Shown: piece after piece, positions 12,801 through 29,730 of the stretch
How positions within the stretch are numbered: the first letter of the stretch is position 1
How the letters are laid out: each line of letters opens with the position of its first letter
Assembly: GCF_000002075.1 (NCBI RefSeq)
Contig: NW_004797392.1
Span: 829,936 to 893,935, forward strand
DNA length: 64,000 bases
Source of the DNA: Aplysia californica
Lineage: Eukaryota
Reading direction: 5' to 3'
Made by a program: the position numbers and the translations under genes
The notes under the pieces: model-generated
Told to the model about the DNA's origin: nothing
What the model saw: only the letters and a program-made list of their open reading frames with translations
Databases searched by the model: none

Positions 12801-15800
12801 GAATTAAATGAACCCAATCGTTAACCCTTTGACTTTACTGTTGTTACAGATAACCAGCCACCCAGTGCTCTGTAAAAGTATCCTGTATGGCGGCTAAAAC
12901 CCATGTTTTATGGCTTGTTCTATGCACATCTTGTCAACGGATGAATTCATTCTTCATTTCTCTGTCTAGTGATATAAGTTTTACTGATCTGTCTCTACTT
13001 ACAAGCAACTAAACATCAATTAAAGATTGGGACATGTCTCTCTTGTGCACAATATAACTTTCCATAGCATGTGGGGTGCATATACGGTTAGTAGTCAAGG
13101 AGTTCACCACAGATATATACCTGGTCTTTCTCTTTCTGGAGCAACATCATTTGTTCCTGGACCTCTCTGTTCCCTTTCTTCATGCTGTCCATCACCCACT
13201 CCAAAATACCCTGCAAGAGTCACAAGATCATGATTGCATCACTTGTGGGTAAGTGAAAAGCAATGGGTCTGATGAATATTTATCTATACTTACCCAGTAT
13301 ACATATCAACTGCTCATTGTAAAACTTTTCAAAATGGCATATAATGGACTCTTACACTAAGTATTCTATGTATTTATTCATCAATATACAGTATAACACG
13401 GATAGGTCGAACACAGAAGACTTGAAATCACGCATCCGTCGAACTGTGCTTGCAGTCCCCTTTTTTCTTCTTCTTGTTCTTTGTAAGATATCCTTCAAAC
13501 TACGGATCCCTCGAACTACTAAGGCCGGTCCTGACGAATTCGACCTATCAGTGTTATCTGTACATATCTATGACATTCGTATGTCTGCATTATATAGGCC
13601 TACATGAATGCCCTTGTGTGCTAATGCTTCATGTATTTTGATGCCATTGTAAGCTGTTAGTGTGCCTTTCAAATGCATTGTAAATTGTGGCAATGCACTA
13701 TGTAAATGCCAAGTATTTTTATGATTATTTCATGCTAGCAAAAACATACATCACCAAAGATTGTCATAATTTACTAGTACAAGCAGAATCAGAGTCTCCA
13801 GCTCTCTCCTGTGACAACTCATTAAGATAATAAAATTTATAAATAGAAAATGAACAACGTCCACTGATAAGAAAGAACCAAGACTCACACCTAGATATTA
13901 TTTAATAAGCTTATGTACCTTGCTTAGAGGCTTACATTGTCTACTCAGGCTTTTAGAGTTAAGAAAATATCTTCCATCCATCCCGAGTGAGCCGGCACAA
14001 ATCAGGATTTCCGCACTGAGTCATAATGAGTTATGAGCCATTTTGAGAATAGAATGCCAGGGCCATTTTGTACCTTTGGTATCTATTCCAAAATTTATTT
14101 ATATAGCTTCACTCAAAGTAGGTTGTAATTTGCTTACATAAGATTACATCTATCATCATCATCATTCCCTTTCTCACCCTGGATCAGGGTATAGGCAATG
14201 AACAAACACTTTCCACCTTTCCCTATCATGAGCTAGCCTCTTGATGTTATTCCATGTCTTCCCATTTTGCTGTACATCAATTTCTGTGACTCTTTTCCGG
14301 ATTCCACGCGGCCTTTAAGAACTTTTACCCTGTGGATTCCAATCCAACACTTTCTTTGTTATTCAGCTGCCTGACTTCCAGAGAGTCTGTCCAATTTATC
14401 AACACTGCCTTTCTTCCCACCTCATTTTAGCAAGTAAGAAATGATTCTGGGGTTTGAAAGCATTATACAGATTTTTGAAGATTCACACAAAAGGACACAT
14501 GACAACATCAGAGCTATTACCTTATTTGCCAGGTTAATTTTTCTTTCATCTTCGAATTTCGCTGACTGTTTTTCTTTCTCAGCCCAAGTCTGCTTCTTTG
14601 CAATTTCTAAATCTTGGATCAGAGCCTGTAAATATAACACAAAACATAATATAATGAAACGAAAAGAAATCCTCAAACAGTTTCGTTCCAACAAATTAAC
14701 AAAATGAAAAGAAAGAATAAATGTTACAATATACTAAGAAGTAAACTGTTAAGTAAGCCTTCAAAGTTTGGGCTTAAATACAGACAAGATGTTTCTGAAA
14801 TAATCTTGCAATAAAAAACCCCACCTAAATAAGCACTGACATTGACAACACATCATACCTCCATTTTTGCAACATCATCCCTTTCAGGCTGTGCAGCAGC
14901 TGCTATTTTATCCCTCAATCGCGCAATGTCCTGTCTCATCTCAGAAATCACATCTTGTGTGTCATCCTGGACGTGAGGTAAGGAGAAATTATTGAGGCAA
15001 ATATAACAGAATCTGACTGTTTTGTTTGAGTAAAGAGAAGCACACTGACACTATAATAGTCATTTAGTGCATGATAAAAGTAAGACAGACAGACAGACAG
15101 AACAACAGAAAGAATGTGAAGAAGAAGGACCTACCAGTGGCGTCCTCCAACCACCCGCTTGAACCTGATTGAACAACCACCTGTCCAGGACAATCACCTG
15201 TACAAATGACCACTTCCTCTTTCCCCCTTGATTTTTTTCTATATATTGTAATGACACCGTTAAACAGGACCACGTGTCTAAGATGACCACTTTTCCCCTA
15301 AAAATGGATGGCTGTCTTGGACAGGCATGACTGAACTAAAACAAGTACAAGACTTGTAACAGTCTCTTGCTTTAAACAATGTGCAACTTGTTGGATCAGC
15401 TAAGTCAGGATTTCCCTCCAGTGAACTTTCACATCTGTTTTTAAAAAATCATCAAGAAGCTCATGAACAAGTGCTGGCACATGAAGATTTCTCTAGTTTG
15501 AAAATTCTCAACCAAAAGAAAATAAATGAAGAAATTATAGGTCTCATTGTAAAGGTGAGTCTAGTTAGTATATTCCAACTCATTTTTCTGTGCAATAAAC
15601 ACTTTGATGAAACAGAAATGGATCCATCTAACAACACAAATGGAGAACCTTTGTGAACTCAAGCCATAAATGTTTGTCCTTCTTGAAATTGCTGTGCATA
15701 TTGTATTCATTTTTATTGTATTGTTAAGTGTGTATCCTTTTTTTTGTTTCAGTAAGAGTATTATGGCACTTGCAACACAATCAGGTCACATAACTTCATA

Positions 15801-18800
15801 TGTGCCAAAGATTAGAGGTGAAACCAGAGAGTAACAAACACAAAAAAGAAGGAGGGGAGATACGGATGATAGACGTATGATAAGAAGGAAGGATCATACC
15901 ACACCTGAGCACCTGTCAACCACCCACCTGTTTTTCTTTTTAAGAATCCAACAAAAAATTAGCTATCATAAATATAACCCCACAAAAGTTATTCGAAAGT
16001 AAACAATATTCAGTTCTGCAAATGACTGTTCAAAATATATAACTCTACTTGTAATGGTAGTGAAAAATTGTATCGATGAAAGAGAGAAGGTGGTCAGAAC
16101 CATTTTGCATAGCATGAATAATGCCAAGAATATGCTTCATTCAGAAGTTAACTAAAACTCAAATTGAACGAGTACTGCAGCCAAAGTAAGCTTCTCTAAA
16201 GGTAGAAATCCTGCTATTTTATTTTATGTAAGATCATAACAAGATACAAAGAAAACAAAAGCACCATAAGCTGACACAAACAGTAGATTTTGAACAAAAC
16301 TGCCATTATTGCACTAAGAGCTGGCAGAATTGACTCATATACAGGCACAGACTCACGTAATGATTTAAAAAATCAATGCGCATATATTACCAGATTTAAC
16401 TGTACTGTATTCTTGATGTTTTTAGCAAAACTGCAGTACTGAAGACAAGTAAGTGTGTCTTGGTAGCTTTTGTCTGCAACAAAAATTAATAAGCAAAAGT
16501 CAGAAACAACTTCAGAAACAAAACCACTACTACATTATAATGATGTCTGCCGTAGATTATTTCTTGAAATCAGAAAGCCACTACTTATCAATTGTAAGTA
16601 CAAGTTATATACTACAATACAAAGAATAATAATTCTATCTGATTTGATCCACAGCGCCATATATATATTATTTCTTGAAATCTGAAAGCCACTACTAATA
16701 AATTGTAAGTACAAGTAATATAGAATCTACTATAATTATAATACAAAGAATAATAATTCTATCTGAATTGATCCACAGCACCGTAGATTATTTCTTGAAA
16801 TCTGAAAGCCACAACTAATAAATTGTAAGTACAAGTAATATAGAATCTGCTAGAATACAAAGATTAATAATTCTATCTGAATTGATCCACAGCGCGGTAG
16901 ATTATTTCTTGAAATCTGAAAGCCACTACTAATAAATTGTAATTACAAGAAATATACTACAATACAAAGAAAAATAATTCTATCTGAATTGATCCATATA
17001 AACACTAGGCACTCCAATAACTCAGTTGTTATCATGACGAACTGGGGAGCAGATGGCCTTAGTTTGAATCCCAGACTGGGCGTTCTTGAACTCGAGTTGT
17101 TCTGTGGAGTTTTCATTAATCTCAACCCATTTGGCTCTCTCTTATTGGGGACATATATTAAATTTTGAAGTCCCACCTAACAGTATTGATAAGGGCATTT
17201 AGCCCATACACTTACTTACTGAAACTTCTGAACATGGGTTACAATGCTATCTCCCTCTATCATATAGCATCAGTTCTCTTCCCTTACTGCTACCCTTCAA
17301 TTTTCTACTTGCAATGTTTTAAATTAGGTCTTCTGAAAATATGCACGTATATAGAATGCAATACATAAAAATAAGTAAGAATCATAAATAATTTAAATAA
17401 AGAAACAATAGTCAGCAGTAGATACTATTCTATTGGAGCATTCAAAGACTTACTCCACAGACCTGATGTTTCATAAAGCTGTGCAAAAATATTTTAATCT
17501 ACAAACTTTCCAGACCTACAGACATGCAGACAGTAGTGATAAAAAACCATATGTCTAATTTCATTGCCAGTTTAATTTACACCAACAAGAGCTCAAATTT
17601 TATTTTACTGTCATCACTTTGCGAAATTCACAAGAGCTTTTCATAATTAATTATACCGAAATGATTAACAGTGTCAAATTTCAGAATCAAAGTATGTTGA
17701 GGTTGCAAGCACAAAACAGTCTAATTTTCAGTTCAAATTCAATAAGTTATGGATAAACAGCAACGATTTATTTATTAAGCTTAGCTCTGAGTTCTAAATG
17801 ATCCAAATTGTGTCAAAGGGAACACAGAACATCTACAAGTACATTAAACTCAGTCTGTGGATTTCACACAAGAAATTTACCTAGGGGAGAAAGCGCAGCA
17901 ATAATCAGCGTGGCAGAGTTTCCTCCCAGGGAATCCTGTAAAACAGAGACATTTTTACTAAAATTATTACGGAGTTGAATGCTCTTTCTTGGTAAACGTA
18001 CAGTGAAGTCCACTAAAACCAAAATCTGTTTAGATGGTTTTTGGTTTAGGAAGGTTGCTTGAAAAGAAGTTAAAACCTCAGGAGAATTTTTTTTCTTTCA
18101 GTTTACTTCTGTCTTCACATAAACCATGTGTGAAGTGTGCTGACAAAATGAGTTACTTCTCAGATTCAAGCCTCAAGGAAATAGACACATCACGCTTATA
18201 GGTGAAGTTTTTACAGTTTTTAAGTATGAAATAATAAAAGTCAGGTTATAGTTAAAGAACATGGCATCAATTGAAAACCTACAAGTTTGGCTAATGTCGA
18301 TTTTTGGCCAATATCTCCATTTGTGGATTGCGAGAAGTAACTCATTTTGTCAGCACGCTTCACATGTTTGGTTTAAAAGCGGCCTCTTCTATATTATTGT
18401 TTTCGTTCCTCTTCGTTACCTCCAGTCTTTCAAATCTTGTATCATCAATACTAACAGGCATGTCTGAACCTTAACACAATGCCAATACCTGTTTTATGAA
18501 AATACAAAGAAGATGGTACTGGCACAACAGGTGTTAATCAAACCACACTTATGTCTCCGTTCTCTTATCAGGATCTTTCAATTGGTTTAATCGAAAACAG
18601 AAGTAAAAATCTAATATCAAATTATATTGGATCTTTCAATTGGTTTAATCGAAAACAGAAGTAAAAATCTAATATCAAATTATATTTCTATTCCTTCTTC
18701 TTCTGATCTCCTTCAGTGGACACCATGATCACGGTCTTGTCAACCTACAGAATAATGAATTGTTCATACACTGACATAAAATTTGTCTTTTTAGAATCCT

Positions 18801-21240
18801 TTGCTTTTAATATAAAATATTCACACAAGTTCCAACAGCTGAATTGACCTGAAAAGGTCTGATTTTTAAAAACTCTCAACACATACATAACAGATAAAGA
18901 TATGTTTGAACTGTCTTAAATAATTGAAAACATGTAAAAACTAAGACTGTGATCAAACATTCCTACAACTAACATACCTGTAGCACCCTCGACACTTTGG
19001 AGTCTCGGTAAGGGATGTGTCCACCTTTTCTTTTTCCATCTCCAAGGGCACTGATAATGTTCAGAACTCCTCTGGCTCTGAATGACAGAGTAAAAACAAT
19101 TTTTTTTTTACTTCTATGGGCACACGTTGGCTTAAACATGATAAAATACATAGATTTACATCAACGAGATTCTACAAACTAGCCAGACTACAAACACTTT
19201 TCTCATTCACATTAAATAAACACCCCAGGCCTCAACAGCAATAGCTTCGAAATTCTTCCCCAGTTCTGCTGTTCCTTTAAGAGTTAGTATATGTATATTC
19301 TGGAAAAAATGACAGAGTCATCTCAGTTTCAGAATGAAACGATAAATGAAGCAGTTCCATTCATTATATTCTTCTCCTCATTGTCTAATACTATCATGAT
19401 CTGCACAACTGACTGGAAGTCAACTTTTCTTAACTAAAGGAAAAGATAAAGGTTAGAGCTTACCCAGCATTGATATTTGGATCTGCGCTGCTCTGGGCTT
19501 CACAACCTAAAAATAATTAAAAACCAAGAAAAATTCTTAAGATATAATCAGTACCTTTTTTGAAACAAACAACAACAACAACAACTGTATTTGTAAACCG
19601 ATAGTCATGATGTTCACACTTGAATAGGTTATTTCTGTATAATAATCCTCTGATCCCACCGCATCAAAGTGCATCAGAATCTACAAAGAGTGATGCTATG
19701 TGAGCAGGAAAATCGGGATCTGAGTACAACATTATCTAAACATTCAGATATTTTAAAAAAGTAGGATCCTAGGCAAACCAAAAAGACAGGCCAAGTGGTT
19801 GTATGTAAGATGTAAACCACAGTTGTCTTTGAATTTCAGTAAACTAAAACCAGATGAAAAAAGCTTTAAAAGTTGTTAGGTGTCAATTTTGACTGTATGT
19901 GTAGAATTACCTGCTAAATCTGCCAAAAGAATTGTTGACCTAAGGCCAACTTTACTTGACTGTCTTTCCTTCTGTTCAACGCAAACGATGAAAATAGCAT
20001 TTGCCCTGCAAAAGATGTAATTTGGAATAATTAAATCAATTTTTCATACTAAATTTCTCTTCAGCATTTAGATAGTCTATCACTCAAAATATAAAAAGTA
20101 CTCTTTATCCAATAAAGCTTCAATCACCAAAGGATAACATTTCCAGTGTGATTATAAAGTTTGCACATAATTCCAGATATAGATCAATCTACATTAGGTA
20201 GATTCTTTTATGGACTCTGAAAATAAAACCTTACAACAGTTCTCTTTCCCAATACTTCCTCGTCACTGCGGCAGGATATGTAATAATACAGAAACTGTAC
20301 CAATGTGTACATACCGGGAAGCAAATAAACCCTGTAATAAGAGTCACAGTCCAGGAGAGGAGTAGTCCAGATACAAACACCCAGCAAACACCCATACAGG
20401 GCGTGTCAGCCTGGTATACTCTAATTAATTACTTGGAAAATTTACAAAACTGTTGTAACTGGGGCACTTGATAAAAATCTATCTCGAAAGTGTCCATTTC
20501 CTTTCTTAGGCCTTTTCTGGATTTGCTTCAAAGGTTTTATAATATTAAAGTGGTTTTGATTGTGCTGTCAAAAAGAGAGACCAAATTAAGACGAAGGAAA
20601 GTAGAAAAAAAACCCAGTCTGCATTTAACTTTGGTCTGAAAAACAAGACATACCTGAACTGGTTTTGAATAAACTAATGTTTGAAGAATCAGAGACATTT
20701 AAAACACTCTGTTTATGAAATCACTAAGAGAAAAAAATTACATAATTGTGAACAATAATACAGCCTTGTTCCCATAACTAATTCAGAAAGAACAAAATCT
20801 TGCTTACTCCAACAGAATACTAAAACCTTCTATCACAAGTCACTTTCAATAACTAAAATCTCACATAAACAGAAATCAAGGTAGCCTCGTAGAACATTTA
20901 AATATCCTGACCATAGCAATTTATTTTGTAAAAGACATTTCTTTCCATAATTTCTGAATAGCAGTAAAAATGAATTTCCAAACATTTTGAAAAGTAAGCA
21001 TTCCAGAGACACCAGGAAATGTAAAGAAATGTCAACACTTGAACAGCAACATTTTGAAAGCCCACAAACCGTGCTGCATGAGTCTTGATATCTGATGATC
21101 CAAGTTTCCTGGCTCTAGTTCCTTGATCATACAAGAGTGCAATGTCATCACCAGTGTGAACAACCAACTCTGAGAGACCATCGATGAAACTGGAAAAATA
21201 CATTCAGAGAAGAAGTCAAACACACACATACACACGCATG

Positions 21241-21278
<38 letters not shown>

Positions 21279-24200
21279 AAACAAACCAACAAAACACAAA
21301 ACATTTCAGAGTCACAATATTTATACAAATTCTGAATCTTTTACCATCAGCAAATATTATTTTGTATACATATAAGACTAAAAAGAGAAGGATTCTTTCA
21401 GCTAAGAACATAGAAAAGAATTTCATATAATCAAAATCAATATCACTGATTTGTTTACCATTAAAATTAATATTATCAGTTTGTATGTCATGAAAATTGA
21501 TACTATTGAAGTTATTCAGCAGCTGACAGTGGTAGCATAGGTGCACAAGAAAAATATATCTGTAAAACTCACATTCCCTTGTGTGGATGTTGACGAATTT
21601 TCATGCTTCTAGTATGGGGGTTGAGAAGGTCAGTCATATTCTCATCCAGTATCTTTAGACAAAAAAAGCAATTATCCATTATTTATCAGTTTTCCAGAAC
21701 GAAAAACATGAAAAAGGTGAAATAAGATGAAAGGCTAAAATCTTGAAACAATAAATTATTCATGCCTGATAAAATATTGCACTGCAAATGCAACAGGAAT
21801 ATATTAACTCACCCAGCCCTAAAGCCGATAATGTCGATATACGCGAGCAACACTCCAACCCTAACGCCGACAGTATCGGTATGGAAAATTTCGCTCTCAT
21901 GACCAAAAACAATACTTTTGTGTGAAGCAGACTATAGCCTAATTGGAAGAGTATCCATTTTTTGTTTGAAACAGACTATGACCTGAAGTGAAAGCCAAAA
22001 TTAAGAACAACGAAAGTTATATTCGAGAACCATGTGAGGGAGTGCGAAATTTGAACGCACTTTCTGTCTTTGCTTTTTGCTTACTTTTTTACTCAGTACA
22101 GAACCTTTTTTCACGGAATATTGCATAAAAATTATGATATATTTAGCCTTCAAATTTTCACTGCACATAAAGGTTTGAATAAAATGAAATGTGTACCAAA
22201 TTTGGGTAGGATATGTTAAAATTTAGTATTTTTTTCAATTTTTCAAAAAGTGGTAAAAATCTCTAGGGAGAGCTGACAATTAACCCGGAAGTGTAAGCCT
22301 AGGGTTGAGTGAGTTAAGGTGTGAAACATAAATTTTGTAAGACAATTTTCAGATGTCCTTCTAAATAAGTGTTTACTCAGTAAGTGTCGATATGAATGCA
22401 ATCTTAAACTCATCAACTGACTTGCTCGTTATGAACTATTTTTTTTGGTGCTTTCAGTGTAGAAGAAAAACCTAAATGGCAGGCAATACAAAACAGTCTT
22501 CCCCTGAAAAAAAAAAGTTTTTTTAAAGTCCAAATGAGCATGTATATTTGCAGTCTATTAAGGGTAACCCGTCAGTTTTGCTTCTCACAGCGTAGTATTC
22601 TTTTTTTTAGCAGGCCTGGTCCTTATAGTAAAAAGCTTTACAATTGGTAGAGTGTCCTAAATTATCACAAAAAGTCATATAATCTCAAGTTTTTTTTTTC
22701 CATTCACAAAGACAAAAGGTGAAGAATCTTTATTGTCCTCCTAAGATCAGGGAAGTGAAGAGCTTGAGTAAAGTTTAAAGTTGTCCACTGTACCAGCAAG
22801 GCCCAGAAACAAAACCAGGGGCTCTGCCATGAGAGGTGAGCTACTTTAACCTCATGGAATTTTGAAGTGGACCATGAGAAGAACATACCTCAACATGTGA
22901 AACTGTGACCATGAACTCCTTGTTGCTCCTTTCCTGGATGTGCCGAAACAAATTCTGAGTCATCTGAAACAACAACCATAAACAACTCAGCTTTCGAATT
23001 CAGAACATACTGTACTGAGGTTGTCCCACCTTCTCCTTGAGGTCCAGCAGGTAATAGTAAGTGGAGTGTACAAGGAAATTTATCCCTATCCGTGCGCCCT
23101 GGGGTAATTTTGTACCCCTGGGGTTGTATTCTTCACATTTTAGAATACTTCTAGTGCAAAGATCTCTTTGAAACTTTCAGCATTTCTCAAAAAATCATTT
23201 TGACAGACTGTTGTGCAAAGCGTATGGGTCGGACTAGCGAGTAAGATTCCTCTTTGGAAAGTGGTGGCACAGAGTTCCCCACGTCGTATGGATACGATAT
23301 TCAAACACGACGTACGGATAGGGTTAACACACAACCAGGAATCTTCGGAATCAAAGAATTTTTACATGCAAATGTTTTAAGACCCCATCAAAGAATTTTT
23401 ACATGCAAATGTTTTAAGACCCCATCAATGCAATTCAGATCATTAAGGAGGCAGGCTGCTTTGACCCTGTCTGTTAGGGCCAAACCTTGTTGAGAGGGAC
23501 ACAATATCCCTGCATTCAAACAGATATGTGTCAAAATGCAGTGGAATCAGGCGCTCATCAATTTTTAGGCATGTGGAGTTACTGGTACCATCTTAAAGCT
23601 TGTTCACTTGTCTTGCCTTCAACAAAAATACCCATCTTTCTTAAATAGAAGTCGAGATATTTGTGATTGGAGATGGGAGCCGCCTCGTTTATGGGTAAAA
23701 TTAGCTAGATAATGGCCACCAAAATTTGAAGACTTACAAAGCTTGGGAGTCCTTGGAAACTGAAAATTTACATTTATTGGCCTTAAATCAACTGTTTTCA
23801 GTAAAATCCACACAGTAATGAGTTTCTAAATGGACATAAAAGGTGCTGAGTCAAAAAATAAAAGATAGATAAAACTTACGAAATGGGAAGAAAAATGCCG
23901 TTTTCTTTTATTTCATTATTTTAACGAGCGCCTCATGTTCCCATGATGCCTCACATATACATGTTCTTGACAAAAATTTTCCCCATTGGAAATTAACCAT
24001 TACACCACAGTTGTTGCACGAATCTTTGGTAAACATTCAAGAAGAGTAAGCAGGCGAAGAGACATATTACTTCCAAAAGATCACTGCAGTCACAGGGTTT
24101 CTTTGCAAATAAAGAAATACCTTTGCCCTCTCCCTTTTTTAAAACTTCAGTACATATCTATGACTTACCAGTGGAATGACACCTGGGTCTGCTTCTGATC

Positions 24201-27200
24201 CAGTCATGATGTGACTTTTCCCTCCACCAGTCTGTGAAGAACACCAAACTCATGAATAATCATTGAGACTAAATCAATTAATACATATCATTATTCATGA
24301 AAATTAAAGACTGAAATTTCATTTGTTTCCCTATTTTCATCTAAATCTGTCTTTTAAAAAGTAAAAAATAAATAAAGTAATAATAATTATTGCATTTATA
24401 AAGCGCATATCCATGCTGTAGAGAATAAACGCGTTTTACAACAATTATTACCCCAGCAGACCATCTTGAAAACATTCTCGGCTTCCGCGGAAGCATACAG
24501 TGCAAGCTGCAGATTTCTCGTACTCATACATTATCAAACTGATAAGATCGTTCACTTTCTATAGCCAGGTACTCATTTCCACCGGAATGAAGTGAGGAAA
24601 ATTCGTGCAAAGTGCCTTTCCCAAGGAAACCTAGGCCACCGATGCTACAATTGTATAAGGTCACAGTAAATGCTTTAACAAACAAACAAAAATGTGTTAG
24701 CTGAAAAGCTCACATGCAAGTAATTACATAGAGATAATGTTAGAAATAATGAAAACTGCATCATGATAATGTCTGTGCCACTCCAGACTCTTGCCAGCCA
24801 TTCACATTGACCTGGCTCCATACTAAGCTAAGCCAGGGACCCATAGATTCCGTATACGATACTAGATTGATTCATAAATGTCTATGCCAAATTTCAGCTT
24901 TTAGAAATGAAACACGCAGAATCTACAGCATTTTTTAGCTGAAAATCAAAGAAATGAAAAACAAAGGCAAAAAACAGGGGGAAAAAATCACCTAAAGCAA
25001 AAATTAAATTTTTTATAATCATCGAAAATTTGCAAATAGTTTGACGTTATCAAAGGAAAAGGGCCTTGAGCCACTAAAATTGTTTTTAAAAAATTCAATT
25101 TAATTTAGATAGTCTTATTCAATAACTTTCTGATTTAATATCAGGGAACAAGCAAGCTCTACTGTATTAATCATAAGGGCTCAACTTGATTTCCCTTTTT
25201 TTAAAAAGTTCTTACCGCTCCAAAGGCAAGAATAGAAACATTGTTGCCATCAAGAGCCTTTTGAAGAAGTGGTGTCACAGCTTGTTCGTAGACATGTCTC
25301 TGTGAAAAGAAATTTATGTCATAAAAGCATGTGAGTTTTCCACATTCTCTGACGATAAAACTTTATAAACATTTATAACACACACAAGCTGCCCACGTGA
25401 AGTTCTGCTATTTTTCTTAAATCTCATGAAAAACAATCTTGCCGGTTAATAATACAATGACTTGTTGTAACACACATGGATACCTACTTTGGACTTTAAA
25501 AATAATTGCTAAAAAGATCACTTTAAAAACCTAAAAAATCCACAAGTTTGCCCATGATCACTTATTTCTCTCATCTTTGTAGTGAGATAATGTAATTTAG
25601 AACTGTGTTAATCCTTCATTGAAAGATCTGACACATCTGTGATTCTGATATGACATTGCTAGTGCAGTTCTGTGAGTTCACCTTGCATGCTTTGTACATG
25701 GACAAGTCTTGAACAAGTTTTGCATCTGTTAAAAATACCATCATTCAAGATGCTAGAAACAGAGCATACAAAAATTTGTACAACCCAGTCTGTCTGCCAT
25801 TATCTCTCGAAAAAACTTTCAGTATTTACGCCCTATGCTCAAAAAAGACCATCAGAGACAGAGAAATTGACCAAATGCCCAAGCTGCTTCTTTCCAAAAC
25901 AATGCAAACCTTGTACAAAATTTCAATCCTCTCAATACATTTTTTAAAAAGACTAAGAAAGGCAGAGACAAAGGGAGTGACTTGCTGCCTAATATCTACC
26001 ATACATAGGATGAGTCTAAGGGAAAAGGGAGACATTAAAAAGTAGTCCAATTCCACCATTTAAGTAGATTTAAACAAAATAACGGGGTCACTTAAGCAGG
26101 TGGTCCTTAATTTCATCATTTGCAAATCTATGCAATTGATGCTATTTTATCATCTGGTGAAAGGTTTTAAATGCCTTGGAAGATAATACATTACATAATA
26201 TGTTTACTCACGTTACTTTTTTCTGGCCCAAAGACGCCATCAAATGAAAACGAGGATTCCTGTTGAAATAATAAATAACTTGAAAATATCTAATATAATA
26301 TTCTCATTCAAATCAAATAAATCAATGGGATTTTTGTTAAAGACACCCATAATATGTCTGTAAGTCTCTAAAATGACAAACTTCTGAAAGAACTTTGCAA
26401 AACTTCAAGATGATGTTTCACGTGTAACAAAAATTATTAGGCTTTGATTTAACACCCTTCTTTTAAAAAGTTTTGTTATTTCCTTCAGGTACTTCAAAGA
26501 CAATTTGAACATTCACAAACACACACACACACTATATGCATACGCACACATATATGCACACATGGTTATGAATATATTTTCCCGGTTGATTACTATGCCA
26601 ATTACTACTAATTCACAGAAATTGCGCATAGGAATGAATGTAAAAATGACAAAGAGATTGAAAGAGAGCTAAATGATCTTCGAGAGGTAGGCAAAGCCCA
26701 TGGAAGTGAATTATCTCATTTTTTTGTCCCCAAAAAGGATCATCATTTCAGAGAGGAACTTTCTGTGTACAGCATTTTACCAACCATGCAGAAAGCATGG
26801 TCATTGCGCTCTTCAAGTAGCCACATCCTATTTCCAAAGTTATTCTTGAGACCCAATGCTTTTTTTGTTAATGCTTGAATCAATCTAAGCAAGCACATAT
26901 ATCTCACAGGGGATAGTCATTAATTATATTCTCTAAAGAAGGCGAAGTTTCTCCCAGCCAACTTCATATTCCTTGATACCTTAAAAAAGACCCTTGGGAT
27001 GTCTTGGTAGATCACTTTGTGTTGTGCACACACAAGTTCTCAAAAGGGCAAATGCCGAGAGCCTGTATTCTAAGCTTAAATTTAAAGGATTCAGCTTTGC
27101 TGGGCTGGGTAAGAATGCCTGATTTCAGAATCTCAAAGGTAGTATTCTATTCTGAACTGTCCTCAGGGAAGCATATAAGGTTGGCACACCAAAACAAAAT

Positions 27201-28518
27201 AAGAGCTACAAAGACACCCTGAAAATGTCTCTGAAGGACTTGAACATAAATATTTCGACATCAGAAAGCAAATATATCATATGAGGTTTCAAGAATACAA
27301 AATTTTAAAAGTTTTATTACCTTTCCCGCACAGTTCACCTTGACTTTGTCACCAGACACAGAAACGACTGAATTTCCACCAGTGTCTTCCTCATCTGATG
27401 TCAAAGGCCGACATTTTGCAACCAACTTTACTCCAAAACTTTCGGAAGGCTTTGATCAAAGACAAGAGGAGGAGAAAGAGCAAATATAACTTTCATAGTA
27501 AACAACAAATAATAAAATATTTGCAAATAAATATGCAAAGTGTCGGCTAATGGATTGGATGACTGAATACTCTTTCAAATTGATTTATTTTATTCAATAG
27601 GTACTAAAATGTTTTTTGTAGGATGTGATATTTCAAAGCTGCACCCTCATCACTTTAAGTTACCAAGGACTAAGATGTGGGCCACCTTTTATTTCCAAGA
27701 ACCCAGCAAAATTGGGAGTTTCTAAAAAATCCATAACTCATATATATATATATGTTTGTCAATCAATTCTCTTATCATTCATGGATATATGTTGTTAATA
27801 ATTGAACGTTCTTTCAAGTACAGGAATAAAACTAAAAGGAACCTGTAGTACATAGTTTTACAAATAAGAGGGTGAGAATGAGGCCAAAGATTGAAACTGG
27901 AGAATGATCTTTCATTGTGCAACGTAATATGAATTATGTTTCTTGTTTAGGTTATATTCTTCGCCGTTATCGTAATCATAAATTCTTAAATGAATTTGAA
28001 TTAAGACTCTCAGCGTGCTCATTTGCCTTAAAGGTATCAAGAATGCTATGTTTTGATCTCATTTGTCGGTGATATATGTGGACATGGTGTACCAGGGAAT
28101 TTGCATTGAAATGGGGAAAATGCAACTCTGGTATGCCGCATAAAAAATTTCATTTAGAAATTACTCTGTCATGCAAGACATCTCTTTCTGGTTTCATTGG
28201 AAAGCAAAAGAATGCATCTTGTAACACCTATCAATTGAAATTGCATATCTACAATAGGCTACACAAGTACAAGTAATTCTGAAACAGAATGTAGAATTGC
28301 ACATTATTTAAAATGAGCCAATTTACCTATCATGTAGATTCTAGATCTAGATCTAGATATCTAGATCTAGGCTAAGTAAAGTTGGAAAATGGCACATTTG
28401 CGAAAATTAACCTCAGCGGGCCTTTGTGATTAAAGGGGCTCGAAGGTCGGGTCAAGGGCCTCGGGGACTGACCAAAAAATTTAACAGTGGAGAAATACAC
28501 AAGCAAATACAATACCAT
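3762..28518 (-). CDS. Divergent kinesin-like protein (N-terminal motor domain, kinesin-3-like neck, long coiled-coil tail), about 702 aa, spliced gene
   Basis: Hand-spliced GT-AG exons with consistent phase: [28518-28516 ATG, tentative], 27449-27321, 26259-26212, 25299-25216, 24231-24169, 22963-22889, 21652-21573, 21189-21070, 20005-19911, 19506-19464, 19077-18978, 17935-17881, 16473-16391, 14966-14859, 14625-14521, 13210-13121, 11108-11012, 10072-9930, 9328-9269, 8960-8859, 7836-7735, 7371-7267, 6022-5872, 3829-3762(TAA). Kinesin motifs: [18 protein letters not shown]-loop [41 protein letters not shown]. Confidence 0.93.
3960..4252 (+). mobile_element. RTE-clade LINE 3' fragment with (TAAG)n tail
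   Basis: ORF 3986..4210 [40 protein letters not shown], typical of the RTE ORF C-terminus. Confidence 0.85.
5872..6022 (-). CDS. kinesin tail exon [50 protein letters not shown]
   Basis: CAG/GTAAGT. Confidence 0.87.
7267..7371 (-). CDS. kinesin tail exon [35 protein letters not shown]
   Basis: CAG/GTGAGT. Confidence 0.87.
7735..7836 (-). CDS. kinesin tail exon [34 protein letters not shown]
   Basis: CAG/GTTAGT. Confidence 0.85.
8859..8960 (-). CDS. kinesin tail exon [34 protein letters not shown]
   Basis: CAG/GTGATT. Confidence 0.85.
9269..9328 (-). CDS. kinesin tail exon [20 protein letters not shown]
   Basis: CAG/GTAAGT. Confidence 0.85.
9930..10072 (-). CDS. kinesin tail exon [48 protein letters not shown]
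   Basis: TAG/GTAAAG; lies within ORF 9903..10268. Confidence 0.87.
11012..11108 (-). CDS. kinesin tail exon [32 protein letters not shown]
   Basis: CAG/GTATGT; coiled-coil composition. Confidence 0.85.
11719..11865 (+). repeat. About 150-bp dispersed repeat family X; + copies at 15767-15925, 53969-54125, 58621-58790; - copies at 11339-11497, about 46117-46312
   Basis: gcacttgcaacacaataaggtcat..gtgcc..aacaaacacaaaaaagaaggag..gagcacctgccaacca. Confidence 0.75.
13121..13210 (-). CDS. kinesin tail exon [30 protein letters not shown]
   Basis: CAG/GTATAT, phase 0. Confidence 0.85.
13387..13562. mobile_element. Tigger-like MITE
   Basis: tacagtataacacggataggtcgaa ... ttcgacctatcagtgttatctgta. Confidence 0.75.
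14150..14420 (-). mobile_element. RTE LINE 3' fragment with (GAT)n tail
   Basis: Minus strand encodes a degenerate ..LDWNPQG..GRPR.. region; the same 3' end is seen at 59540-59622 (-) and 55550-55645 (+). Confidence 0.7.
14521..14625 (-). CDS. kinesin exon [35 protein letters not shown]
   Basis: CAG/GTAATA; TWxEK motif. Confidence 0.88.
14859..14966 (-). CDS. kinesin neck-coil exon [36 protein letters not shown]
   Basis: CAG/GTATGA, phase 0. Confidence 0.88.
16391..16473 (-). CDS. kinesin exon [28 protein letters not shown] (end of motor domain)
   Basis: CAG/GTAATA; corresponds to ETLSTLRYA..AK.IKN. Confidence 0.9.
16551..16997. repeat. Tandem repeat, about 115-bp unit x4
   Basis: tatttcttgaaatctgaaagccactactaataaattgtaagtacaag...aattctatctgaattgatccacagc repeated. 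Confidence 0.9.
17881..17935 (-). CDS. kinesin exon [18 protein letters not shown]
   Basis: CAG/GTAAAT; DSLGGNS motif. Confidence 0.95.
18131..18362. mobile_element. About 230-bp MITE family S; further copies at about 37465-37697 and 63106-63337
   Basis: About 30-bp TIR gaagtgtgctgacaaaatgagttacttctc ... gagaagtaactcattttgtcagcacgcttc. Confidence 0.8.
18571..18686. repeat. 58-bp tandem duplication
   Basis: ggatctttcaattggtttaatcgaaaacagaagtaaaaatctaatatcaaattatatt x2. Confidence 0.9.
18978..19077 (-). CDS. kinesin exon [33 protein letters not shown]
   Basis: CAG/GTATGT; HIPYRDSK microtubule-binding motif. Confidence 0.95.
19464..19506 (-). CDS. kinesin exon [15 protein letters not shown] (switch II and short loop 11)
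   Basis: TAG/GTAAGC; phases 1/2 match the neighbouring exons. Confidence 0.85.
19911..20005 (-). CDS. kinesin exon [31 protein letters not shown]
   Basis: CAG/GTAATT; leads into switch II. Confidence 0.9.
21070..21189 (-). CDS. kinesin exon [40 protein letters not shown] (degenerate switch I)
   Basis: CAG/GTTTGT; lies within ORF 20898..21203. Confidence 0.9.
21573..21652 (-). CDS. kinesin exon [26 protein letters not shown]
   Basis: AAG/GTGAGT; DLLNP motif. Confidence 0.9.
21804..22317. mobile_element. MITE with TTAA target-site duplication (piggyBac-like)
   Basis: ttaa-ctcacccagcccta ... tagggttgagtgag-ttaa terminal inverted repeats. Confidence 0.8.
22889..22963 (-). CDS. kinesin exon [25 protein letters not shown]
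   Basis: CAG/GTATGT, phase 0. Confidence 0.9.
23080..23327. mobile_element. About 245-bp piggyBac-like MITE (family P), copy 1
   Basis: TIR ccctatccgt(a/g)cg flanked by TTAT/TTAA; homologous to 53705-53952 and 57580-57828 in opposite orientation. Confidence 0.85.
23527..23900 (+). repeat. Dispersed repeat family Y; copies at about 39728-40110, fragments at 7856-7900 and about 27630-27725(-)
   Basis: Shared gtggaatcaggcgctc.tcaattttt, gagtccttggaaactgaaaatttaca and taaatggacat blocks. Confidence 0.75.
24169..24231 (-). CDS. kinesin exon [21 protein letters not shown] (P-loop)
   Basis: CAG/GTAAGT; Walker A GxxxxGKS completed across the junction. Confidence 0.93.
24378..24648 (-). mobile_element. 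SINE family A copy, internally deleted in the tRNA region
   Basis: Shares ggaagcatacagtgcaagc, tgcctttcccaagga and ctaggccaccgatg blocks with 33487-33845. Confidence 0.8.
25216..25299 (-). CDS. kinesin exon [28 protein letters not shown]
   Basis: CAG/GTAAG; matches the GxNxxIxAxG motif. Confidence 0.92.
26212..26259 (-). CDS. kinesin exon [16 protein letters not shown]
   Basis: CAG/GTGAGT; FxFDxVF motif. Confidence 0.9.
27090..27260 (+). mobile_element. Degenerate RTE/BovB-like LINE fragment
   Basis: [30 protein letters not shown]-like translation. Confidence 0.65.
27321..27449 (-). CDS. kinesin exon [43 protein letters not shown]
   Basis: AG acceptor and GTAATA donor; matches the motor-domain start motif V..RxRP. 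Confidence 0.9.
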
Positions 28519-28519
28519 T

Positions 28520-29730
28520 TTAATAAATTCGATGAGCGTACGATGGCTGTCAAACTCGGAAAATTTCCTTGGTAGTTGTGTACATACACAAATTTTGATG
28601 ACGCGATATTTTTAAAAACCTGACCACCATAACGGAACAATACTTAAACTAAAGATACGTTACGTGTGCCGTGCGTCAGGCACCACGCGCGCCTATTCGA
28701 AACGACCTGTAGAAAAAAAAATATATCTACTGTTATGTTATGAAAACACAAACACAACGGTTAGGCATATGTCTTACTACATGGGTGGCGCTTGTTTTGT
28801 TGGATCAAATTTGTTCGATAAGCAGTGTAGGCCAAGCGCGAATGAGAATAACAGACTTGTCTTGTTGTGGGCCTGCATAGAAATACATGTAATAAGTAAA
28901 AATTGCCTGGAAGTAAATACTTAATTAGTCGTTGTCAAGCTAGGCTCTCATTCCCACTCATTGGCTGTTTGGTAGCTAGGCTAAAGGATTCCTTTTTAAA
29001 TACTCATGAACATTCGGCTCTAGTAATAAGTAATTGTGTGAGGTATGATCTAGAATCTCGTCTCCTTCCCTCATTCNNNNNNNNNNNNNNNNNNNNNNNN
29101 NNNNNNNNNNNNNNNNNNNNNNNNNNNNNNNNNNNNNNNNNNNNNNNNNNNNNNNNNNNNNNNNNNNNNNNNNNNNNNNNNNNNNNNNNNNNNNNNNNNN
29201 NNNNNNNNNNNNNNNNNNNNNNNNNNNNNNNNNNNNNNNNNNNNNNNNNNNNNNNNNNNNNNNNNNNNNNNNNNNNNNNNNNNNNNNNNNNNNNNNNNNN
29301 NNNNNNNNNNNACTTGTTGTAAGTGTTGTTATTGCTCTTCTACTTCTTCTTCTTCTGTCTTTGGAAGTGGGCCTATCGTTTGTGAGTGTATAGAGATTAA
29401 AGGAAAAGATAATGATTTCGTCTATCCTTTAAAAACCCCAAACAAAACAGTATAACAACACTCAACAGTTACCCAAAACACAAAACCTTTGACAGGGCTA
29501 CAAAACACATACTACAAAAATCCCCTTTTCACTTCCAGAGAATAGAGCGCATTTCGAAAATACTTATAGCTCTAGCTCTAGAGGCTCGCTAGAGAATGAC
29601 TCTGGAACAGGAAGAAGGCAGAGGCTGACCTTGTCTATTTTCACTTTCAATTGTTTTGTAAACTGGACTTGGATTGCTCGCCCAACTAGCAAAGTTGACG
29701 ACACTGCCCGACTCTTGTTTTCTCTTGAGT
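28520..29730. promoter_or_regulatory. Putative bidirectional promoter / 5' UTR region shared by the kinesin (-) and OCIAD1 (+) genes
   Basis: Divergent gene orientation with putative starts about 1.2 kb apart; local CpG enrichment (e.g. 28660-28710 cgtgtgccgtgcgtcaggcaccacgcgcgcc). The TSS cannot be determined from sequence alone. Confidence 0.5.

Follow-up and report, generated by a model that had tools for sequence, protein, structure and literature searches.

A Kinesin Gene of Aplysia californica With a Remodelled Switch I and a Shortened Loop 11, Candidate Scaffold of a Eumetazoan-Wide Family of Degenerate Motors

The stretch of Aplysia californica DNA analysed here (64,000 nucleotides of contig NW_004797392.1, hereafter the window) carries on its minus strand a kinesin gene whose 23 coding exons, delineated by a protein-guided exon chain, run from 27449 to 3762 and join in frame. 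Their translation corresponds to residues 2-702 of the public Aplysia protein P0052 (702 residues, automatically named "KIF4A" in the public record), followed by the stop codon, and matches exactly the preliminary description made from the DNA letters, which had announced 23 exons, about 700 residues, an open frame and canonical splice sites. The 12 motor exons (27449-16391) encode 325 residues with zero stops and with AG/GT at all junctions. The initiator ATG sits on a further upstream exon, for which there are two ATG|GT candidates, at 28630 and 28518; a relative 83% identical to the Aplysia protein is encoded by the marine metatranscriptome transcript contig L001, and its 5' untranslated region offers no homology usable for choosing between them. 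The gene is present as a single copy, the high-identity matches in the Aplysia genome being all located on the window's contig. Per-exon Pfam scans report weak kinesin matches only, and the entire protein scores 249.3 bits with the Pfam Kinesin profile (PF00225, profile positions 1-327, cut-off 29.3), which places its kinesin identity, as judged by this profile, far above chance. As detailed below, the switch I and loop 11 (L11) regions of this motor depart from those of canonical kinesins, this departure is shared by eumetazoan orthologs maintained under purifying selection, and the protein is probably a microtubule-binding scaffold instead of a walking motor. The exons and the candidate start sites are the following, residue numbers being those of P0052.

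28516..28630, minus strand: candidate ends of the upstream ATG-exon, ATG|GT at 28630-28628 and at 28518-28516
27321..27449, minus strand: coding exon 2, the first fully modelled, residues 2-44, with beta-1 and the RxRP-type adenine-pocket motif AKCRPL (exon chain)
26212..26259, minus strand: coding exon, residues 45-60 (exon chain)
25216..25299, minus strand: coding exon, residues 61-88, helix alpha-1 up to AFGA (Pfam Kinesin profile 57-83)
24169..24231, minus strand: coding exon, residues 89-109, P-loop TGGGKSH with Walker A kept (exon chain, alignment)
22889..22963, minus strand: coding exon, residues 110-134, ending with SHVE at the start of beta-4 (exon chain)
21573..21652, minus strand: coding exon, residues 135-160, the segment that reads IYNE in canonical members, and loop 8 (L8) KIRQHPHKG (junction 21573|21189 in transcripts)
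21070..21189, minus strand: coding exon, residues 161-200, helix alpha-3 and the first part of the degenerate switch I (both junctions in transcripts)
19911..20005, minus strand: coding exon, residues 201-232, ANAIF (canonical SHSxF), beta-6/7 and DLAG of switch II (transcripts)
19464..19506, minus strand: 43-nt coding exon, residues 233-246, end of switch II and shortened loop 11 (transcripts, three studies)
18978..19077, minus strand: coding exon, residues 247-280, helix alpha-4 and loop 12 (L12), the microtubule-binding face (transcripts, alignment)
17881..17935, minus strand: coding exon, residues 281-298, DSLGGNS, alpha-5/beta-8 (transcripts, alignment)
16391..16473, minus strand: coding exon, residues 299-326, helix alpha-6 and neck linker, with the family-invariant N325 (transcripts, alignment)
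14859..14966, minus strand: coding exon, residues 327-362, neck coil (exon chain, AlphaFold model)
14521..14625, minus strand: coding exon, residues 363-397, kinesin-3-like first coiled coil (CC1), QTWAEKEK with the near-invariant W376 (alignment, profile)
13121..13210, minus strand: stalk exon, residues 398-427, a block conserved family-wide (exon chain, alignment)
11012..11108, minus strand: stalk exon, residues 428-459 (exon chain)
9930..10072, minus strand: stalk exon, residues 460-507 (exon chain)
9269..9328, minus strand: stalk exon, residues 508-527 (exon chain)
8859..8960, minus strand: stalk exon, residues 528-561 (exon chain)
7735..7836, minus strand: stalk exon, residues 562-595 (exon chain)
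7267..7371, minus strand: stalk exon, residues 596-630 (exon chain)
5872..6022, minus strand: stalk exon, residues 631-680, conserved C-terminal block (exon chain, alignment)
3762..3829, minus strand: last coding exon, residues 681-702 and stop codon (exon chain)

The P-loop of the Aplysia protein, GATGGGKS, fits the GxxxxGK[ST] pattern and is also found in the 83%-identical relative P0075. Switch I reads K-T-H-A-A-R-A-N versus the canonical NxxSSRxH, the Arg being the only residue of SSR that is kept, while switch II reads DLAGCE, in which the Asp, Gly and Glu are kept, the Ser is replaced by a Cys and the next Arg is gone. The alignment counts 19 residues from DLAG to helix alpha-4, as compared with 27-28 in canonical members of the family, hence a 9-residue deletion. 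In a typical kinesin, Mg2+ and the gamma-phosphate are in contact with the Ser residues of switch I, and it is through L11 that hydrolysis is linked to microtubule binding. All motifs quoted in the preliminary description (P-loop, switch I, switch II, INAGA, HVEILDE and the microtubule-binding motifs) read as stated there. Its wording of a motor that has "lost switch I" goes too far: Walker A, RxRP, the Arg of switch I and the D.AG of switch II all persist, and the replacement motif is itself conserved, as shown below.

Spliced transcript contigs from three different studies were compared with the genome over window positions 16300-22299; a further data set, raw reads of 2026, has no coverage of these exons. 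The three contigs, of 4583, 2363 and 528 nt, all carry the junctions 17935|18978, 19077|19464, 19506|19911, 20005|21070 and 21189|21573, while 16473|17881 is present in the 4583-nt and 2363-nt contigs; the 4583-nt contig extends merely ~8 nt past 27449. The 43-nt loop 11 exon has the junctions on both its sides carried by transcripts of the three studies, and no alternative micro-exon around loop 11 is seen in these contigs. The short loop 11 does therefore lie within exon 19506-19464, as first proposed, and the RNA-seq comparison that had been suggested returns the expected junctions on either side of the exons for switch I, switch II and L11. The switch I exon of the genome and that of the two longer contigs differ by 0 letters, and the H-A-A-R stretch of Aplysia is present in transcripts. 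The sole recurrent difference between genome and transcripts is located at position 19954, a plus-strand A in the genome and a G in all three transcript sets; as the coding strand changes from one Ser codon to another (AGT>AGC), this synonymous difference is considered a polymorphism or a strain difference and not a recoding edit. Since transcripts match the genome at the exons they cover, assembly error, mis-splicing and RNA editing are excluded.

A search with the exon in which switch I starts (39 residues) against 1.84 billion representative proteins reports 21 matches, mostly exon-sized fragments at 51-66% identity, with a full-length match in the crinoid protein P0019 (709 residues). All of them read S/T-D-I/V-K/R-x-H-R-x-R at the NxxSSR site. 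Full-length searches with P0019, then with P0095, of which the best 120 matches with 0.55-1.75x the query length (up to about 1,240 residues) were considered, delineate a family of ~700-residue proteins that align end to end, stalk included. Deuterostome members are found in crinoids, brittle stars, starfish, urchins, sea cucumbers, hemichordates and amphioxus, and protostome members in nemerteans, annelids, a brachiopod and many molluscs. Outside bilaterians, the family comprises anthozoan cnidarians, four sponges, the holozoan protists (Nk52 and EukProt transcriptomes), and further protists: oomycetes, brown/yellow-green algae, Cafeteria, a thraustochytrid, a dinoflagellate, the jakobid Andalucia and the metamonad Trimastix. 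Among these best 120 matches of 0.55-1.75x query length, none belongs to a vertebrate, tunicate, arthropod, nematode, flatworm, ctenophore or placozoan. The Culex quinquefasciatus protein P0196, whose motifs are canonical, was considered as an insect ortholog and rejected, having two tandem motors, no stalk homology and an equal similarity to KIF3. This 1058-residue protein, publicly named 'kinesin-II 95 kDa subunit', contains near-identical motor copies at residues ~81-470 and ~479-870, probably an assembly or gene-model duplication, and its motif FINYRDSKLTRILQ resembles that of kinesin-7.

IQ-TREE was run on 69 sequences, the only outgroups being of the KIF3 type. In the resulting tree the family branches in the order protists, Nk52, sponges, cnidarians, an unnamed clade, amphioxus, Ambulacraria and Lophotrochozoa, and the molluscs are monophyletic. 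The family is supported at 100*, Holozoa at 97* and Cnidaria plus Bilateria at 99*. The gene tree mirrors the species tree, as would be expected of orthologs. The unnamed clade, also supported at 100*, lies between cnidarians and bilaterians and consists of three environmental or unlabelled sequences (P0082, P0084 and P0090), with a degenerate switch I of their own and an intermediate loop of 21 residues; they may originate from medusozoans, xenacoelomorphs or another early-branching group. The orthologs (P0052, P0022, P0026, P0029, P0033, P0041, P0064 and others) bear at least a dozen automatic names, among them KIF4A, KIF4B, KIF3A, KIF3B, FLA10, KIF13A, KIF1B and unc-104, as well as klp-20, KIN-4A, kinesin-II 85/95 kDa, osm-3-like and KIF21A. 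No name-transfer rule fits the family, and the public names are misleading. A literature search for a name of the family or an account of its degeneration found no paper, in line with the idea of an under-described lineage put forward in the preliminary description.

The state of the catalytic motifs follows the clades of this tree, the last figure of each line being the distance from DLAG to alpha-4.

Aligned sponges, Nk52 and protists (n=20): Walker A 20/20, N..SSR[ST]H 20/20, D.AGSE 20/20, 27-28 residues
Further non-eumetazoan sequences (n=100, some N-truncated, Walker A left out of the tally): N..SSR[ST]H 100/100, D.AGSE 98/100, 26-30 residues where the pattern matched
Cnidarians (n=3): Walker A 2/3, N..SSR[ST]H 0/3, D.AGSE 1/3, 25-26 residues
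Unnamed clade P0082/P0084/P0090 (n=3): Walker A 2/3, N..SSR[ST]H 0/3, D.AGSE 0/3, 21 residues
Bilaterians (n=36): Walker A 35/36, N..SSR[ST]H 0/36, D.AGSE 11/36 and D.AG.E 25/36, 10-20 residues

The SSR of switch I is thus found in 120/120 sponge and protist members versus 0/6 cnidarian-grade and 0/36 bilaterian ones. The bilaterian switch I is far from a random sequence: its consensus is G.RARKmGa.Di.aHRaRah.iF, in which the residues G, R, A, R, K, G, D, H, R, R and F each reach at least 80% in the 36 sequences. The cnidarian replacement (D-K-N-S-G-G-T-K-S-D) is unlike the bilaterian one. Of the two features that the preliminary description proposed to look for in orthologs, KxHAAR and the short L11, the latter is common to bilaterians and the former is not, H-A-A-R being private to Aplysia where the other bilaterians read H-R-x-R. 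In switch II, DLAGCE is common to gastropods, and bivalves display the variants DCAGNN, EIAGFD and DLAMGE. The beta-4 motif, YLEIYNE/QE in canonical members, is E-I-L/M-D-E in bilaterians. Across the 62 aligned members, residues R201 (the Arg of SSR), D230, A232 and G233 (D.AG), the L12/alpha-5 residues P269, Y270, R271, S273, T276, R277, Q280, G284, G285 and N286, and the neck-region W376 are conserved at 90% or more, and the neck-linker N325 is invariant. A tree computed without the P-loop, beta-4, switch I and switch II/L11/alpha-4 columns places one state change on a branch supported at 100*; this single change is a minimum, because the residues that replace the motif differ between cnidarians and bilaterians.

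The codon alignment of the Aplysia sequence with its 83% relative yields a nonsynonymous divergence (dN) of 0.10-0.12, equally low in the motor, in the switch I-L11 segment and in the stalk. Synonymous divergence (dS) is saturated, with maximum-likelihood values of 1.7 to over 4, so that the Nei-Gojobori dN/dS is undefined and the maximum-likelihood estimate and the bound alone are usable. The ratio dN/dS (omega) is far below 1, and purifying selection therefore acts on motor and stalk alike. The degenerate switch I and the short L11 are lineage-wide and under purifying selection, and hence result neither from assembly error nor from private decay; none of the 36 bilaterian orthologs exhibits the canonical motif, and these two outcomes, named in advance as grounds for discarding the observation, do not apply. 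The Pfam motor score decreases from 378-398 bits in canonical members to 199-260 in bilaterians, two cnidarian sequences reaching 308 and 233. While pairs of canonical members have a motor identity of 0.58 versus 0.27 for the stalk, bilaterian pairs have 0.53 versus 0.57: the bilaterian motor remains under constraint, but the stalk is now constrained at least as strongly.

An AlphaFold2 model of the Aplysia protein, computed with the 62-sequence family alignment as input, has a mean predicted local distance difference test (pLDDT) value of 86.3, with most motor blocks in the 90s and the motor minimum around residues 190-250; it is a confident kinesin fold. The remainder of the protein is modelled as long helices. 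Foldseek reports kinesins only, and the model superposes on solved motors with template-modelling (TM) scores of 0.82-0.92. The top superpositions are the kinesin-2 motors OSM-3, KIF3C and GiKIN2a (TM 0.92, root-mean-square deviation ~2 Å), and the longest match, over 406 columns, is the autoinhibited crystal structure of the kinesin-3 KIF13B motor, neck coil (NC) and CC1 (6a20, the first-ranked Foldseek match).

The best PDB match of the Aplysia protein is KIF4 (211 bits), without a clear preference; the alpha-4/L12 exon alone matches KIF7 best and another exon favours KIF13B, a contradiction that makes single-exon matches of no use in assigning the family. A profile built from 25 canonical orthologs ranks KIF1A first (519 bits, motor-only), followed by KIF13B (496), KIF3B (490), OSM-3 (482) and KIF4 (429). 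It aligns to KIF1A residues 4-415 and KIF13B residues 3-433, and NC-CC1 constructs score 37-41 bits above motor-only ones, so that the neck coil and CC1 of the family are taken as homologous to those of KIF1A and KIF13B. Pfam detects no FHA domain in any of the 62 members at E<=0.1 and no other stalk domain over threshold, kinesin-4 stalk families included, and its Kinesin_assoc family returns sub-threshold matches in 8/62. In the ESM Atlas, the named clusters nearest to the stalk are KIF27 and KIF7, at 0.85 and 0.84, values under the reliability line. Two orthologs of the Aplysia gene had already been classified by Wickstead, Gull and Richards in 2010 (PMC2867816, Additional file 3): Lotgi_235687 (P0068) and Capsp_221227 (P0054), whose motor hidden Markov model scores are low (274 and 156), figure in that table as 'Kinesin-2' without a subfamily, and the paper makes no comment on their catalytic degeneration. 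Other subfamily-less Kinesin-2 entries of that work, from Nematostella (337), Monosiga (517) and Naegleria (536), are at most candidate orthologs of the Aplysia gene, and Lottia has separate 2A, 2B and 2C genes with scores of 610-634. A Kinesin-17 identity, initially considered, was dropped when these two orthologs turned up as Kinesin-2. The family is parted from KIF3-type sequences by the 100* branch and reads INKSLS where the KIF3 sequences of the set read INLSLS, and orthology to kinesin-2 subfamilies 2A/2B (KIF3) or 2C (KIF17/OSM-3) is thereby argued against. Placement at the border between kinesin-2 and kinesin-3 is the most that these comparisons would allow, and the public name KIF4A is wrong.

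Several known systems share features with this family. With kinesin-2, it has in common the best structural superpositions, and the falling motor scores of the unassigned Kinesin-2 entries (PMC2867816) parallel its own Pfam gradient; it is, however, distinct from the intraflagellar transport subfamilies, Lottia possessing 2A, 2B and 2C besides. The likeness to the kinesin-3 proteins KIF1A, KIF13B and KLP-6 lies in the neck coil/CC1 alignment, which extends to about position 430 for ~40 extra bits, and in a TWEEK-type segment that is near-invariant in the family. In contrast, the family is devoid of FHA, PH or other tail domains and of the lysine-rich K-loop, and its ~700 residues include a family-specific coiled-coil stalk. 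KIF7 and Costal2, kinesin-4 scaffolds of the Hedgehog pathway, are non-motile and use their motor as a nucleotide-dependent microtubule-binding module; their alpha-4/L12 is very similar to that of Aplysia, but they belong to another family with other stalk domains. KIF7 keeps the canonical NxxSSRSH. Its ATPase is low but measurable, KIF7 being non-motile yet reliant on this low activity, and an ATPase-deficient P-loop mutant binds microtubules constitutively (PMC12919046). According to work cited in PMC12919046, the kinesin-11 proteins KIF26A, KIF26B and VAB-8 are unconventional kinesins that attach to microtubules but have no motor ATPase activity. In the published table, KIF26A/B form a separate clade, X7, and the two orthologs of the Aplysia gene are under Kinesin-2 (PMC2867816). 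The yeast Kar3 partners Vik1 and Cik1 lack a nucleotide site and are unrecognisable as kinesins by sequence, as opposed to the Aplysia protein with its Walker A and 249 Pfam bits. These two partners have a kinesin-like fold and bind microtubules without catalysis, and KIF26A/B and VAB-8 are about 1,900-2,100 residues long, with a long N-terminal region ahead of the motor.

The analysis demonstrates how the gene is built, that it is expressed, which orthologs it has, how the motifs differ from clade to clade and that purifying selection acts on it; from these, we consider it probable that the family is a eumetazoan-wide degenerate motor, with ATPase loss inferred, that serves as a scaffold instead of walking. 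The Aplysia gene would belong to an ancient, single-copy family of ~700-residue kinesins combining an N-terminal motor, a kinesin-3-like neck coil/CC1 and a long conserved coiled-coil stalk, whose members in protists, holozoan protists and sponges have the motor in canonical form. In the common stem of Cnidaria and Bilateria, NxxSSR would have been deprived of its Asn and its two Ser, which sense Mg and the gamma-phosphate; in Bilateria, the new motif R-A-R-K-x-G-x-x-D-I-x-x-H-R-x-R would have taken their place and loop 11 would have been shortened by roughly 8-18 residues, its LKEG stretch included. What is retained comprises, in the nucleotide pocket, Walker A, the adenine-binding RxRP, the Arg of switch I and the D.AG of switch II, and elsewhere the L8/alpha-4/L12/alpha-5 microtubule face, the neck-linker Asn and the stalk. 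The bilaterian protein may thus continue to bind nucleotide and microtubules, microtubule-stimulated hydrolysis and stepping being presumably abolished or strongly slowed. The head would bind microtubules in a nucleotide-dependent or rigor-like manner, its stimulated hydrolysis being slight or nil; it may be under the control of the neck-CC1 module, and the stalk might supply specificity. As the pocket and the microtubule face would be kept and catalysis impaired, we propose for this protein the role of a regulated, static or slowly cycling microtubule-binding scaffold, to which the ATPase-deficient KIF7 mutant offers a fitting precedent by analogy. The wider scenario, in which a canonical kinesin found from jakobids and oomycetes to sponges turned into a hydrolysis-deficient nucleotide-binding scaffold at the base of Cnidaria and Bilateria, gained the new conserved pocket motif D-I-x-x-H-R-x-R, was kept since then by purifying selection in most marine phyla, and was lost in vertebrates, arthropods and nematodes, seems to us evenly poised between right and wrong. 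A ciliary role, based on the occurrence in flagellated lineages and the kinesin-2 affinity, is a guess.

Some considerations weigh against the scaffold proposal. The loss of hydrolysis, in any member, is read from the sequence, and the retained R201, D230/A232/G233, Walker A and N325 would fit slow ATP turnover as well. In myosin, removal of the switch I Ser does not abolish ATPase activity, and the Ser losses of this family therefore need not fully inactivate the enzyme. The change may have occurred as two parallel losses following a shared relaxation. As to the absence from vertebrates, arthropods and nematodes, it is drawn from the best-120 lists, which long, short or very divergent descendants would escape.

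Among the other explanations, the one that survives best, though we judge it unlikely, is that of a still working motor, in which H-R-x-R, the switch I Arg, D.AG and Walker A would allow a non-canonical hydrolysis and a slower movement or a KIF7-like cycling. It is favoured by Walker A in 35/36 bilaterians, by the retained R201, D230/A232/G233 and N325, by the strong purifying selection on the motor and by KIF7 itself, non-motile but dependent on a low ATPase (PMC12919046). However, the switch I Asn and both Mg/gamma-phosphate Ser are missing in 36/36 bilaterians, the switch II Ser-Glu varies (D.AGSE in 11/36), L11 is truncated with a variable length, and the bilaterian motor is no better conserved than the stalk. 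More doubtful is an obligate non-catalytic partner of an active kinesin, by analogy with Vik1/Cik1 and Kar3. The long conserved coiled-coil stalk and the kinesin-2A, 2B and 2C genes of Lottia beside its family member would be compatible with heterodimerisation, but the Aplysia genome contains no paralog of the same family (although some other partner may exist), the stalk is conserved back to protists with a canonical motor and no evident need for a partner, and the nucleotide pocket is kept, unlike that of Vik1. That the gene encodes the chromokinesin KIF4A, or another kinesin-4 such as KIF7/KIF27, is very improbable: KIF4 as the best PDB match at 211 bits, the KIF7 match of the alpha-4/L12 exon and the KIF27/KIF7 Atlas clusters (0.85/0.84, under the reliability line) point that way, whereas canonical orthologs rank KIF1A, KIF13B, KIF3B and OSM-3 above KIF4, orthology extends over the full length of ~700-residue sponge and protist proteins, the two classified orthologs are filed under Kinesin-2 and not Kinesin-4/10 (PMC2867816), and the automatic names of orthologs differ in a dozen ways. 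Least credible of all is an artefact or a decaying gene (assembly error, mis-joined model or recent pseudogene), for which the unusual motifs themselves and nothing further can be invoked, and which is refuted by spliced transcripts of three studies that agree with the genome at the exons they cover, a frame open across 23 exons, the same motif states in 36 bilaterian orthologs and an omega far below 1.

If the wider scenario is correct, the loss of the family from vertebrates, arthropods and nematodes would explain the neglect of a pan-invertebrate microtubule-associated protein. The family is a part of the cytoskeleton conserved in echinoderms, hemichordates, amphioxus, molluscs, annelids and corals, and is apparently missing from the standard model animals. 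Few degenerate kinesins are known (KIF7/Cos2, KIF26, VAB-8 and Vik1), each with a distinctive signalling or scaffolding role. The family would moreover constitute a natural experiment, in which a shared stalk accompanies canonical (sponges, holozoan protists), intermediate (cnidarians) and remodelled (bilaterians) motors, so that the path from motor to non-motor could be retraced step by step and put to biochemical test on naturally occurring proteins.

The surroundings of the gene provide no functional hint, the open reading frames of at least 75 residues between 28 and 64 kb being without a Pfam match, and the neighbours of the Plakobranchus gene (an unannotated 100-residue call and an ependymin gene) are not kept beside the Aplysia gene. 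The introns of the gene contain several repeats. The intron between the L12 and DSLGGNS exons harbours a 236-bp element (18129-18364) with 33-nt terminal inverted repeats that are 97% complementary; its summed depth in RNA-derived contigs is enormous, with many variant letters and loose ends, and it looks like a multi-copy transposon resembling miniature inverted-repeat transposable elements, transcribed somewhere in the genome. Ahead of the last motor exon, the intron contains a 114-nt unit repeated four times in tandem (16549-16996, 84% matches). Other introns of the gene hold a 58-nt unit (18571-18686) and a 37-nt unit (23350-23428), each perfectly duplicated in tandem, and a 64-nt tandem duplication (11463-11580). 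Lastly, a long (GT)n microsatellite (21213-21303) is located in the intron upstream of the switch I exon, and the window itself starts with an extended CA/GT-rich low-complexity stretch (1-570).

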